From Pavona decussata (Eukaryota), in contig CDRNST010000090.1 of NCBI GenBank assembly GCA_977016875.1, positions 992,001 through 1,056,000 of the forward strand: a DNA stretch of 64,000 nucleotides, read 5' to 3'. Below, in pieces: positions 29,001 to 38,000 of the stretch. The first letter of the stretch is position 1. Each line of letters begins with the position of its first letter. The position numbers and the translations under genes are program-made. The notes under the pieces are model-generated. The model did no database searches and was not told the origin of the DNA. It saw nothing but the letters and a program-made list of their open reading frames with translations.

Positions 29001-32000
29001 AACACATTAGCTAGGCTTTCATCCACTGACATAAGTATGAGACATAAACCGTGTCCCCTCAGGAGTGGCATGCAGAGTACTGCTCAGTAGTTCCTGTTTG
29101 ATTTGTCACACTTTAGAATTTCATTTATACAATCACTAAAAGTAAGATCTACCGTACCTCGTAACGCATAACAAATAGTACCGCAGGAAAAAACCGTTTT
29201 CAACAGCTTTTGTTTGGTTTGTTACACTTTGGTATTTTTAATCCCAGACTCGAAAGTTTATGGGAACCGAGGTTGGCTGCGTCAACCGGAGAGACAAAGT
29301 TAACAATGCGCGGCTTGTTCGGCGTCGGTCATTTGTTTAAGAAGAAAGGAAAAATCGATTCGATTCTCCTCAATATGCGTCTTTTATATTTTCTATTACT
29401 TCTTTTAAGAAAGGTTACTTACATCATCGCCATCTTTAAGTGGGCATGAATAATAAAATTTCCCCACCCGCTGGGCTCTAGTTTAAGCGGAAAAAAGGAA
29501 CTTCGCCATACGCCCATCACACGAGCACTTGGCACTGCTGACGAAGTTGTGTGGCCTCATGCCTTAGTATAGAAATCAGCTGCAAAGTGTTTCCCCTGAA
29601 TGAAAACAAAAGCATCAGTGCTGTGAAGAGCTCCTCAAGGATTACCATGCTTACGCCCCCTCCTCCACCCCTCCCCTTTCAAATTAACACCTTCTGATCA
29701 ACGATCAAGAGGCTGAGAACCAAGGGGCATTTAATATTGGAAAGGATTGCTCACTCCGACAATTCAGCTTTATGTCACAGAATTAATGTCTGAGCGCTTT
29801 TTTGTTCAACGTCGGTTATTTGAATTTGTAACTAACAGTCGCTTTATATAGGACAATTAAGACTTAAGCCTTTACACAAAAAAACAGGATAAAATCTTAT
29901 GCCACACCCTTCACCTTATATAGCTCGTCAGGTTATCCTTTGTTTGAAAACAAGACATGGGCGGCTTAGTTCACCAAAATAGACAGTGAAAAATATATAT
30001 TTTTACCCTTTGTTTACGGAAGTCTCTTCATGAAGACATTTCCGATGAATTACAACCTTTTGAAAGCGGAAAATTAGTCGGAAGACCAGAGTGTTGTCAT
30101 TAGTAGATTTACGTTGTTTCAGCATCCGCTGTCGTAAAAAAGAAACAAATTCCGTTCGTTTTTGTGGATAAGCTTTAATCGGTAAGAACAAAGGTCATCG
30201 TAATGGAAACGCAATGCAGTTTGTTGTTGGTTATTTGAATCGTGAACGGCCACCGAGGTGTCATTAAAATTCATGCTTAAAAACGATTTGAGGCATAGCG
30301 CATATTGAAGAATATGGGCCACGGAAAGGTCACTGTCTTGCCCAGAATAGCGACCAATATAAACAAACTGTGCGTTTTCCAGCTGCAGGCCACCTTACAG
30401 CTTCTAATCACTCACGCGAGTTTGAGATTAAGAGAAACAGGAACTCAGGATTTTTACCAAAGTGAATAAATTAGTAAACGTTTCCATAAAATAAATTATG
30501 TTGAAAATTAGAAACTATGACAAACTCGAATCGGTTGATACCGCATCAGTTCAACCGACGAACCTCTCCCAAAAATGGCGATTAAAATGCATTATAGTTA
30601 CAGACGCATAACCGAGTCCCATGTCAAGGTTCGTTGCGGCTTGGTTTCAACAGAACCGTAATCACCTTTTCACTAACTCCCGATCCCTGTGGACAAATAA
30701 ATCCTTTGTTTATCTTGTTTGCGGCCCATGTTTAAACACTACACACAAATGCAGCATTGAAACTGCATTTTTTTATTTTCTATTTTTTTTTTTCCATTTA
30801 GGTCAGATCAAATGCTTGAGGATATTATTTTTAAGTTGGTACCAGGACTGCAAGAAAGTAAGCAATTATATTTGTTTCATTTAACTTTCAATTTCCATCT
30901 GTTGTTTTGATATTAAGTTGAGAAAGTGCCCATAAAGCATCATTTAGATGGTTAATTCTCTTAATAAAGTGCTTTACTTTCGCCTCAGTTGTCAATATAT
31001 AGTTGCCTTGGTTTCCATTTCAAGTTCCGGGTGTTCAGTTCACATCATTCCACGATGTTCAAAATATCTGACAAGGCGAAACTCACTTGTCTTGAACATT
31101 GTTTTTAAATTGAAGTAAATTCCCCTGACGAGAGTATTTTGCGTTGTTGTTTGGCACACGTTCGGCTTTTGTTCTTCCGCTTCCCTGGCAACACAAAGTT
31201 CAAGGAACTGTTAAGTTTCACTTTCCCTTTCAGCGCTAACTACCTTCCAAACGAAACCATATTGGTACAGGGCCAATCATAACAGCTATTATGCTCTTAA
31301 CAATAGCGTATTGATGACTACAAAAATAGCAACAACTTCCCTTGACCACCAGGTGGATTGCGTGACTCTCTTTGTTTTGTTGAGTCATAGCCAGCCCACT
31401 TAGTTTCTATGTTTACTGGTGACTACACTACTACCTTCGCTTTCCAAACTGATTCGCGGAAAAACCAGTCCAGTCAGTGCTTTAAAAGCCTTTGTTAAAT
31501 TCCCACTTTAGCTATTCTAGGAAAGAAACCTGTTTTTGTCGTTCTTTCGAGGAATTGAAATACACAGGTTAGAATCATCGCAATGCGCGTTTCTTGGTGA
31601 TATTACTCAGTAGCTTTCTATTATCGAAAGCGTCGTGCTCTGAAATCAAACAAGAGTTAATTATCCGTCTACCTTTTCAAGACTGCAATTTTATAGCACT
31701 TTTAAATTTGCATATGCTAACGAGCAAGCATGAACTTGCCTTTGTGGTTGATCAGTTGAAAACACCGGAAGACTTTACTCGGGGAAACCCCTCAAGAGAT
31801 GATTCGCTCCGATTGGCTAATATAAATAGGCTGAAAAAAACTTCCTTGTTTTCTCGAGATGTGATTCCATTTGAACCTTTATATTTATAACAAGCAGGAC
31901 TTCTCCGTTGTTGTCATTTTGAACTGGATCGCTAAGAAACGCTTTAAATCTAGATCTTAAATGGCGAAGCATCAAAGTACGGAATTCGTCATCGCGCAGA

Positions 32001-35000: not shown

Positions 35001-38000
35001 AAAAAAACAGAAACAATCTTAACTTTAATTACGTTAATAATGTCTTTACCAGGCAGCCAAGATAAGCCGCGCGGGCTGTCCCACGAATACTGTTAATAAC
35101 TCATTATAAGGCGAACGATAATTCGATGGAATTGTAGATTTTGGCATCGATGAGTCATCATGCATCTGTTTTCCTGCTAATTCATTTCTATTTGATGAAA
35201 TTGCCAGGATTAGTCGTAATGATTATTCTTCTCCATAATCTTTCCGCTCCAGTTGTCAGACCTTTATATATTGCACGTTGTTCGGAGTTGAATTCCTTAA
35301 CTGTGACCATTTAAGGAAGGCGCCTCCAACTACAAAAATAATTTTGCGTGGTTTTTGGCTATGCGGAAAAAGCAGATCTGAGTAAGGGCTATTGAAATCC
35401 AAAAGAAAGTTGAGGTTAGCCATACATTTCTCAGAGATAATTAAGCAACAAAAATTACGAAGTTCAAATCAGTACATAACAATGAATGGTATTCTTTTTG
35501 GATTCCGATAGCCCTGCCTTGAAGATCTGACCTCCCGCATAGGCATAAAATGCGCAATATTCCTTTTGCATTAGGAGCCATCTTATTGAAAAATCCTAGT
35601 TTCTCGAAGCATTTCGTTTGCGCAGAACGCATGCGCACTAACTAAAGAAGGAACCGTCCCTAAATGAAGGCTAAAGAGCGCTTCTGTTCTGTAACTTTTG
35701 TTTGTGTGGATAAAAGATTACGGGCCTGTTTAAATCGACTGGTGAATATTTGACCGTTTCGTTTTTTTGTAGGAGAGAGACGCCAACAAGAGGAGTTCAA
35801 CAGATCTCTTCGTTCAGGAAAAAAAGACGGCAATGGCGGCTTCAAACACAAACACAAACACGAAGGTATACCGATAAATTTTTGATTTGTTTGTAAACAT
35901 CATCCGGTTGAACATGGGGAAGTCATAATATTGAGATTCTACGTCTAAAGCCGGCGACACACTAGGCGATTTTATTTGCCGATCGCGGCGAATTGATCGC
36001 AAGCGATTTTCGCCCCCGATTACTGCGGACCTTTTGGCGATTTGGCACTCTCCTGACTTTGTTCCCAGGCTCCATCGTATCACTGCTATCCGCCATTTTG
36101 AAAAGTCATGTGATAAAATAGCCCATCCTGATTGGTTGACTTTACTGATATCTGACATGCCAGATATCGACGATTTTATACGCCGATCGCGGCGATCGGC
36201 GAAAATCGCAATCGCTGCACCAGGCACACAAGGCGAATGCCGGCGAATTTAATCGCTGATATTTTACATGCCAGTTATCGGCGATTATATTCGCCGATCG
36301 CGGCGATCGGCGTATAAAATTGCGTAGTGTGTCATCGGCTTTAAACCTGTACTAACATGGTACTAAGCTTCTGAGAACGATCGATAGATGAACATAGTTT
36401 CAAGTCACGTTCTCTTTTGGTCAGAAACTCACAGGTTGTCATGGCGAATCTCGTGCACTCCTTCGGAGTTTGAATCTCCTCAAGTTCAGTTTCATTGGAA
36501 TCGAAACGGAAGCTCAAACGCTCCCTTTTGTTGGCAACTATAGCTCTTAGGCTTTGACTTTATTCGCACGCCATTGGTTGACACGTATCACGTGTCGTAA
36601 TGTCTTCCACCATCCTTAATTTTTGCATTCTTTCCCTTTTGTATCTTGATGTAATTTTTTTTACATTAAAACACATTTCTTCATTGATTTTTCTGTGTGA
36701 TAAGTACTTGTGTGTCTGTTGTTTGTCATGTTTTGCAGTTTTAATATTCGGCGAAAATCATCATTTGGCAAATAATTGTTGAATATAATAACCTCCACGA
36801 ACAGTGTTGTTCCATATGCTCGAAATTTTGGTTTGTTGTTAAACATAATCATTCTCCTTGAGTCTCGTTCTCGGAACACAACGTCATATTTTTTTTTCGC
36901 TAAATCAGTAAAGGGTTAAGGCTGGTTCACACGTCGAACGCAAACCCAAGCAGAATGAGCTACGCACGCGCATTTCAGTATCGCAAGATGGCGGCAATCT
37001 TGTTCCTATAGTCCGCGGTACCCTAGACCAGCAGTTGGGAAACGAGGACTCTGGCAACGAGATTAAAGATGACGGAGGAAGACGCCATCTTGGTTTGAAC
37101 GTAAACCGTAGAGGCATGGGACGAGTATTTTTCATTTTGCGTTTGCCCGGTTCACACGCGTGAAATGCAAACGCAAGCGCAAATGCAAGCTCAAGGAAAT
37201 GAAAAATCAGTTTTCCATTTCTTGTGTTGGCGCTTGCATTTGCGTTGTGGTAGTCCACACGTGTGCTTGCAGTTGCGTTTACGTTGCTCGTGTGAACCAG
37301 CCCTCAATGTCTATGCACACATTAGACGTCGATGGAGTGATCGGTGTTTGCCCTAAATATTGATCTTTAATTTTTGGATTGTAGAATTTGGAATCGACGA
37401 ACCTCCTCCAAAGAGACACAGAAGCATGTCCCGAAAGACAGATCATTCGGATGACTCGGACAGTACACAAAACTTTCACCGAGATGATCCACAGATTGGT
37501 GTCTGTCTACAGTACCTCAGGTTTAAAATAATCGCATCTGTCTTTATTTCTACTCGTTTAATCACCCCTCCTCCTCCTCCTCCTCCTCCTCCTCCTCCTT
37601 CAGTGCAGTTAATTCGGTTACCTTCAGGATCGCGATTTGGTGTTCAAAATAGCGAAACAGATAAGCATGCACTCACAATGACAGAGATAGTACAGCTCAC
37701 TAGTTATATTTGATCAGTATAGAAAGTTGTGTTGCTGTGCTCTGCACTTGCAAAGGGGAAAACATTGACATGACTGTCGAAGTTAATTTTTGACTCACTT
37801 GCCGCAGTTTCTCGAGTTCTGATTGTTTTATTACTTGTTTGCTGATTTCTTTGGTTTTGTTGAAAACGCTTGACTTGTCTCTTAAGAGGCTGTTATAAGG
37901 GAACTTTAGCAACGATTACGGCGACGACAGGGAAAACATCACTATTAAAATGAATTCGCGTTTGTTCAAACGTCGTCACGATTATTCCAACTTGCTTTCG

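Follow-up and report, generated by a model that had tools for sequence, protein, structure and literature searches.

How did a complete ribonuclease (RNase) gene come to lie inside an intron of a Polycomb gene, on the same strand, and does its position there influence the host? The question is raised by a 64-kb stretch of a 602-Mb cnidarian assembly, that of the coral Pavona decussata (contig CDRNST010000090.1, positions 992,001 to 1,056,000). In this stretch, called the window below and free of N, a single-exon gene of the Regnase/N4BP1 type sits between the RING-coding and RAWUL-coding exons of a PCGF5-type gene. We conclude, at a probability of roughly 0.78, that the two form an old host/nested pair, in which a cnidarian RNase paralog with KH, UBA, NYN and CCCH domains, likely retroposed, entered the PCGF5 intron in sense orientation before the stony-coral radiation. 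The central features are given here in window coordinates.

30802 to 30857, plus strand: host exon 4, ending ...KLVPGLQE, with a GTAAGC donor at 30858 and the RNA joint at its end.
30858 to 35772, plus strand: 4915-nt host intron around the RNase gene, spliced out at GT..AG sites in the contigs of four runs.
31961 to 34264, plus strand: nested single-exon RNase gene with a 767-aa open reading frame (ORF), covered by joint-free RNA contigs and intact in nine loci.
35773 to 35866, plus strand: host exon 5, RERRQQEEF...KHKHKHE, with acceptor TTTTTGTAG.

A preliminary description of the locus placed the end of exon 4 at 30857 and the start of exon 5 at 35773. Both boundaries carry the expected GT and AG sites, and the reading frame across them stays open (...KLVPGLQE / RERRQQEEF...). 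RNA evidence was taken from Logan contigs on the interval 30500-36300, from four runs (X1, X5, X6 and X8) that represent four studies and no more than three samples. The joint 30857>35773, which the preliminary description had named as the junction to look for, is found in contigs of all four runs. In X6 it is spanned by a 1171-nt contig and is therefore part of a long spliced mRNA. The host splices cleanly across the nested gene. An assembly chimera, or two separate loci whose RING and RAWUL halves do not belong to one gene, is refuted by these joint contigs, by the gene model that NCBI provides for Oculina patagonica and by the same arrangement in nine independently assembled loci. With no N in the window and nothing found in its favour, this explanation retains practically no credence.

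In the RNA contigs the guest appears as an unspliced transcript. Contigs lacking the joint lie over the RNase ORF, with starts at 31486, 31740, 31807 and 31916 and ends between 34459 and 34518. The mRNA would be ~2.7 kb long if it starts ~30 nt after the TATA box, and the position of this box would suit a putative transcription start near 31850. Contig word-depth, which is a poor measure of level, is 10–370 over the RNase and 4–21 for the joint-bearing contigs. RNA coverage stops at the guest poly(A) signal, the depth being zero from 34574. The intron beyond the RNase 3' end (34574-35349 and 35544-35737) is uncovered in all four runs, contigs being unable to show absence.

The nested ORF is the longest by far in the window, in which the only other ORF of at least 170 aa is its own antisense shadow (216 aa). 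The preliminary description had reported this ORF on the host strand of the 4.9-kb intron with its own TATA promoter and poly(A) signal; the ORF, a TATA box (31821) and a poly(A) signal (34558) are all present. The predicted protein has the following domain layout.

Residues 8-69: KH domain, N4BP1-type first domain (PF23050; Pfam 40.1 bits, cut-off 27).
Residues 176-210: UBA-like domain, Regnase-type (Pfam).
Residues 277-432: NYN RNase domain, Zc3h12a-like (PF11977; E=1.4e-63, 213.6 bits, profile positions 2-154 of 154).
Residues 444-462: CCCH finger, C-x5-C-x5-C-x3-H, directly after the NYN domain and aligning to the Regnase-1 finger.
Residues 716-761: C-terminal UBA domain, N4BP1-type (PF23054; 24.6 bits, below the cut-off of 27).

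The finger scores 20.1 bits against Pfam zf-CCCH_2, below the cut-off of 25.8, and the PF23054 match is precomputed in several orthologs of the nested RNase. The Regnase C-terminal domain PF18561, carried by the vertebrate matches, was found neither in the RNase (Pfam scan) nor in any cnidarian match. The NYN and CCCH region aligns with the Regnase-1 structure 5h9v at E=5e-81, and the DGSNVAM, CYDD and VSND motifs are the same in both proteins. These motifs contain the acidic catalytic residues of human Regnase-1 (D141, D225, D226 and D244). The protein would be an active Regnase-type mRNA endonuclease.

The RNase ORF is intact in nine of nine loci. Compared with three species, the ratio of nonsynonymous to synonymous substitution rates (dN/dS) is 0.07–0.09 over NYN and CCCH, 0.14–0.21 over KH and UBA, and 0.2–0.7 in the disordered C-terminal half, with overall values of 0.21–0.33. 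By this pattern of substitution the nested gene is under purifying selection. The disordered half also contains a 75-nt tandem duplication (33516-33665, 95% identical), which encodes a 25-aa unit twice. RNA contigs are broken at the edges of the duplication (33545/33619), and their depth is approximately doubled there.

The sequence upstream of the ATG contains a block of motifs, and a poly(A) signal follows the stop codon.

31706 to 31828, plus strand: promoter block of the nested gene, recognized by motif conservation across coral loci.
31706: ATTTGCAT, present in six of eight loci.
About 31764: CCGGAAG, ETS-type, with the CGGAAG core in all eight loci.
31781: GGGGAAACCCC, matching the kB consensus GGGRNWYYCC, found once in the window, with the kB core in all eight loci.
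About 31811: GATTGG, an inverted CCAAT, part of the promoter block.
31821: TATAAATA (TATA), the single TATAAA upstream of the RNase ORF.
34558 to 34563, plus strand: ATTAAA poly(A) signal, the sole canonical signal between the RNase stop and the next host exon.

The block lies within 300 nt before the ATG and is common to complex corals, robust corals and the locus L012. Motif order and spacing are kept in seven of the eight coral loci, with near-fixed positions at approximately -195, -180, -150 and -140 from the ATG. The comparison argues strongly for an autonomous promoter within the host intron. At the other end of the gene, ATTAAA or AATAAA is found 255–326 nt past the RNase stop in six of eight loci. 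The corresponding motif order in Oculina (L009) is located just upstream of the annotated ATG. This annotated start codon (L009 10001) is 18 nt after the kB motif, and CCAAT and TATA do not lie upstream of it; the NCBI model of the Oculina RNase (787 aa) probably starts too far upstream.

The age of the arrangement can be read from other corals. Full-length orthologs of the nested RNase are 96, 89, 77, 71 and down to 45% identical to it, and include those of Porites lutea and four Acropora species among complex corals and of Oculina patagonica and Orbicella faveolata among robust corals. Eight orthologous loci were fetched and compared for nesting. In seven of them (L005, L006, L007, L008, L009 from Oculina, L011 of Acropora type, and L012), the RNase lies on the same strand between homologous PCGF5 exons. 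Its ORF is uninterrupted, 1.07–1.6 kb downstream of the KLVPGLQE exon and 1.3–2.1 kb upstream of the exon-5 homolog, in an intron of 5.0–5.6 kb. Every orthologous locus keeps the KLVPGLQE exon shortly upstream of the RNase and has the exon-5 homolog downstream of it, L013 included. The NCBI annotation of Oculina patagonica likewise contains a single-exon RNase within a 284-aa RING and RAWUL gene. In the RNase tree, the window gene groups with complex corals, the robust corals are sister to these, and L012 is basal to both, the whole clade having a support of 100. A distant group (P0044, P0046, P0047 and P0048; 35–45% identical) is also intronless.

Two further loci are located outside the scleractinian clade. 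The distance from the LVPGLQE exon to the RNase downstream is 12.8 kb in L014. On the other side, an exon-5 homolog flanked by AG and GTAAGT sites follows the RNase of L013 after 4.6 kb and carries the paralog-1-type motif SKKDGSGKLKHK. Both the nest and the identity of the host as paralog 1 thus predate the split of the L013/L014 lineage from stony corals. The two loci belong to one species (99.2% identical flanks). A 3.5-kb long interspersed nuclear element with reverse transcriptase and endonuclease (1084-aa ORF) occupies positions 2412-5907 of L013, in the host intron, and is absent from L014; it is a polymorphic insertion.

The split between complex and robust corals is usually put at roughly 250–420 million years. 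As the nest is common to both groups, its minimum age would fall in this range. By the comparison of loci the nest is ancient and conserved across stony corals, as opposed to lineage-specific, and its structure is well supported. Host and guest differ strongly in their rates: across L005-L012, most host PCGF5 exons are 84–100% identical where the guest protein is 45–57% identical.

The origin of the nested gene was approached through its relatives. The Pavona genome holds one full copy of the nested type and two other NYN genes, C172 and C36, giving at least three cnidarian Regnase/N4BP1 lineages in this coral. C172 has at least three coding exons, a KH-UBA-NYN layout like that of the nested gene, and 55–62% identity to it in the NYN domain. 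Its orthologs are an Acropora gene named 'KHNYN-like', to which the last exon is 88% identical, and Nematostella 'ZC3H12A'; these multi-exon genes form a clade, here clade B, with a support of 99. The Nematostella gene (P0051) was considered as an ortholog of the nested gene and rejected: it has four coding exons and groups with C172, to which its NYN exon is 73% identical, versus 55% to the nested gene. Its neighbours are a DUF4807 gene and kynureninase, and it does not lie in a PCGF gene. This clarifies the cnidarian Regnase/N4BP1 family. Homolog searches in three annotated sea anemones returned the clade B gene alone; the nested lineage either arose after the split of sea anemones or was lost in them.

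The two remaining relatives have features of their own. On the minus strand of the C36 locus (L018 6183-6701 and 9664-9903), the matching NYN position is interrupted by a 3-kb intron, and the NYN exon of this gene is closest to a jellyfish protein (64%) among the proteins compared with this locus. In the jellyfish Rhopilema esculentum (L016), an RNase relative is annotated inside another gene on the same strand, of the PIP49_N family, which is a second, independent sense nesting in the RNase family.

Exon boundaries of these genes were mapped onto one alignment to compare intron positions. An intron after the KH domain (nested position ~61-65) is shared by Nematostella, Acropora clade B, the octocoral Dendronephthya and the jellyfish Rhopilema. 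A second intron, after DGSNVAM (position 288/289), is shared by Nematostella, Acropora clade B, C172, C36 and Dendronephthya, the Rhopilema boundary being ambiguous. The nested gene is uninterrupted at both positions. Because its relatives share introns that it lacks, the intronless state is derived, and losing every intron in a single event speaks for an RNA intermediate. A retrocopy origin is likely. The preliminary description had suggested that a retrocopy or relocated gene entered one PCGF5 paralog. The derived intronless state and the presence of the RNase in only one of the two paralogs agree with this suggestion; a recent event does not fit, as the nest is shared by complex corals, robust corals and a lineage outside them.

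It is also conceivable that an intron-bearing RNase gene was relocated or segmentally duplicated as DNA and then lost all its introns stepwise, with no RNA intermediate. No hallmarks of retroposition survive, and the guest has a complex, conserved promoter that a retrocopy would have needed to acquire secondarily, both of which speak for such a route. It would require the independent loss of at least two ancestral introns. Moreover, the nested-lineage members examined all have uninterrupted ORFs, the most distant included, and intermediates with some of the introns were not seen. We regard stepwise loss as quite unlikely and favour retroposition.

Several observations weigh against an old, retroposed gene with its own promoter. 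Neither a flanking poly(A) remnant nor a target-site duplication was found around the nested gene, erosion being expected at such an age, and the search for direct repeats in the host intron returned only the tandem duplication inside the RNase ORF. The search for an intron-bearing parent, which the preliminary description had proposed, yielded no close one: the nearest paralog is C172, and the nested clade does not fall inside clade B in the RNase tree. Because scars and a close parent are both absent, intron loss by itself carries the case for retroposition. The deep nodes of the tree are weak, with a value of 15 in the Shimodaira–Hasegawa-like approximate likelihood ratio test (SH-aLRT). 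The free tree puts P0045/P0057 next to the scleractinian clade, and an exclusive clade of scleractinian and L013-type sequences that leaves these two out is marginally rejected by the approximately unbiased (AU) test (p-AU 0.04), a grouping that was poorly chosen in view of this placement. The transcription-factor assignments in the promoter block are consensus matches only. Finally, the label of the four runs ('RNA?') is a guess, and contigs cannot give transcript starts, ends or levels; the runs behave as RNA, since the spliced joint is present and stretches of the intron are empty, the uncovered part beyond the guest 3' end being the strongest indication.

We propose that the mRNA of a KH-UBA-NYN-CCCH endoribonuclease paralog was retroposed and would thereby have lost all its introns in one step. 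The copy would have ended up, in sense orientation, in the intron that separates the RING-coding from the RAWUL-coding half of one PCGF5 gene in a tandem pair. This insertion would predate both the stony-coral radiation and the split from at least one further anthozoan lineage. The ETS-kB-CCAAT-TATA promoter, judged by motif consensus, may make the guest inducible by stimuli. Any effect on PCGF5 would be of the ordinary kind seen with sense-nested genes, through transcriptional interference or a prematurely formed 3' end. The pair probably stays together mainly because a gene within an essential, highly conserved host cannot easily leave.

The preliminary description went further and linked the two genes functionally. 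This immune/Polycomb coupling is a hypothesis, according to which induction of the RNase, for example through NF-kB, would divert host transcription to the guest poly(A) site. The result would be less full-length PCGF5, or a RING-only product, and a path from immune or stress signals to Polycomb repressive complex 1.5 (PRC1.5). The intron upstream of the RNase (30.86–31.5 kb) is covered in three of the four runs, and one X1 contig (30829-31788) runs unspliced over the exon/intron boundary, with the part downstream of the RNase uncovered in all runs. This asymmetry is suggestive: host transcripts may continue into the guest and terminate at its poly(A) site. Upstream guest starts together with pre-mRNA would explain it equally well, and contigs give presence, neither absence nor level. 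Mammals provide documented cases in which a nested gene drives premature polyadenylation of its host (PMC11694760, PMC3192792). The conserved kB consensus in the guest promoter and the very long retention of the nest are also in keeping with coupling.

Other observations speak against it. The putative RING-only product would consist of the RING half and an intron-encoded tail of variable length (7 to 50 aa) that shows no conservation across the coral loci. Our literature search found no coral expression data for the nested RNase, immune challenge included, and the studies listed for ZC3H12A and coral, 12 of 23, were all mammalian. Long retention is expected of any gene nested in an essential host, so that conservation can be simple inertia. 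We consider functional coupling unlikely. A stronger version, in which the nest is a selected device that converts stress or infection, via the kB and ETS sites, into host termination at the guest poly(A) site and hence less full-length PCGF5, and has been kept for this since before the stony-coral radiation, appears very doubtful. If true, it would constitute an immune-to-chromatin link in coral cells.

The remaining features of the host, and the corresponding intron of its paralog, are as follows.

23801 to 23917 (approximate, tblastn), plus strand: first RING exon of host paralog 1, 77% identical to the paralog 2 exon.
28766 to 28870 (approximate), plus strand: second RING exon, with human PCGF5 (4s3o) as the best solved-structure match (E=9.2e-9).
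About 37396-37521, plus strand: further host exon, from paralog comparison.
About 39180-39284 and about 39910-39999, plus strand: RAWUL exons, from RAWUL PF16207 matches.
About 40200-40259, plus strand: last host exon, from paralog comparison.
50656 to 50910, plus strand: equivalent intron of PCGF5-type paralog 2, 255 nt, GT..AG, same phase, no RNase.

The host was compared exon by exon against solved structures, and its PCGF5 class derives from the best match and the order of genes in the cluster. The first RING exon also matches human PCGF5 4s3o best (E=4.7e-12), and it is 92–100% identical in the orthologous loci whose fetched flank includes it. No PCGF3 entry is found among the solved-structure matches of the host RING exons. 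The RAWUL domain PF16207 reaches 33.3 bits (33.6 with neighbours), at a cut-off of 33.5. Intercomparison of the three PCGF-like genes of the window places the exons of paralog 1 at approximately 23.8, 28.8, 30.8, 35.8, 37.4, 39.2, 39.9 and 40.2 kb. Paralog 2 is compact (46.4–53.1 kb), and the third gene is on the minus strand (14.5–4.8 kb). A fourth, more divergent RING and RAWUL gene lies just upstream of the window on the plus strand (L019 3368-9053, corresponding to C90 983368-989053) and is a candidate PCGF6.

A PCGF6-PCGF3-PCGF5-PCGF5 cluster has been described in Nematostella, Aiptasia and Acropora (Gahan, Rentzsch and Schnitzler 2020, 10.1101/2020.03.18.997064). The four genes here fit this order, with the two PCGF5 paralogs adjacent, and together the matches and the gene order support a PCGF5-type host. 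The preliminary description had contrasted the nested gene with the other PCGF introns, and this contrast holds: the paralog 2 intron has the length and boundaries it gave, and the PCGF3 equivalent, taken with the boundaries given there (8542-11905), contains no ORF of at least 100 aa.

Some further sequences lie in the host introns. A dispersed repeat is common to 35311-35543 in the host intron and 55828-55960 downstream of paralog 2; its part 35350-35543 is covered in all four runs with a loose end at 35456, and is probably transcribed from elsewhere. A run of ~20 A at 34982-35005, ~420 nt past the guest poly(A) signal, is a point at which reads appear cut. In the next host intron, a high-copy repeat (35932-36300), overlapping an ORF of 137 aa on the minus strand (35814-36227), shows very high contig depth and many differing loose ends in all runs.

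An RNase has been drawn in the anthozoan PCGF cluster before. The legend of Fig. 3B in Gahan et al. 2020 lists 'RNase: probable ribonuclease ZC3H12B' among the cluster genes (10.1101/2020.03.18.997064). The nest itself is visible in the public Oculina annotation. In that paper the word 'nested' is not used, and the strand, introns, origin and promoter of the RNase are without comment. The nesting, origin, age and promoter of the gene have apparently not been described before. The locus provides a clean and datable sense-nested gene of retrogene type, which would have survived the whole history of stony corals inside a highly conserved chromatin gene. It also offers a tractable system in an early-branching animal for asking whether the induction of a nested gene changes the output of its host.

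The coral RNase resembles Regnase-1 and its relatives (ZC3H12A-D) in the NYN domain followed by a CCCH finger and, as in Regnase-1, in an N-terminal UBA-like domain. It resembles N4BP1/KHNYN in the first KH domain and perhaps in a weakly matching C-terminal UBA domain, both of N4BP1 type. It thus joins features that are split between two vertebrate subfamilies. Unlike Regnase, it lacks PF18561 and has a single exon; immune regulation is a feature of the vertebrate proteins.

Imprinted retrogene/host pairs such as Mcts2/H13 have reportedly been described by Wood et al. in 2008 (cited in PMC11694760). In contrast to Mcts2/H13, no imprinting or allele-specific regulation is implied for the coral pair.

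The closest parallels are the sense-nested single-exon genes of Drosophila and mammals. The statement in the preliminary description that nested genes are usually antisense is valid for Drosophila, where 71% lie on the opposite strand (PMC3814207), but not for mammals, in which the two orientations are nearly balanced (PMC11694760). Of the 29% of Drosophila nested genes on the same strand as their host, 72.5% have a single exon, for which selection against mis-splicing has been proposed (PMC3814207). As in these cases, the coral guest lies wholly in one host intron, on the same strand and intronless. It likewise has its own promoter and poly(A) site, and the host may be terminated prematurely. 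One difference is age: the nested pairs described in flies and mammals are mostly young, whereas the coral pair is far older and has been kept across a whole animal order.

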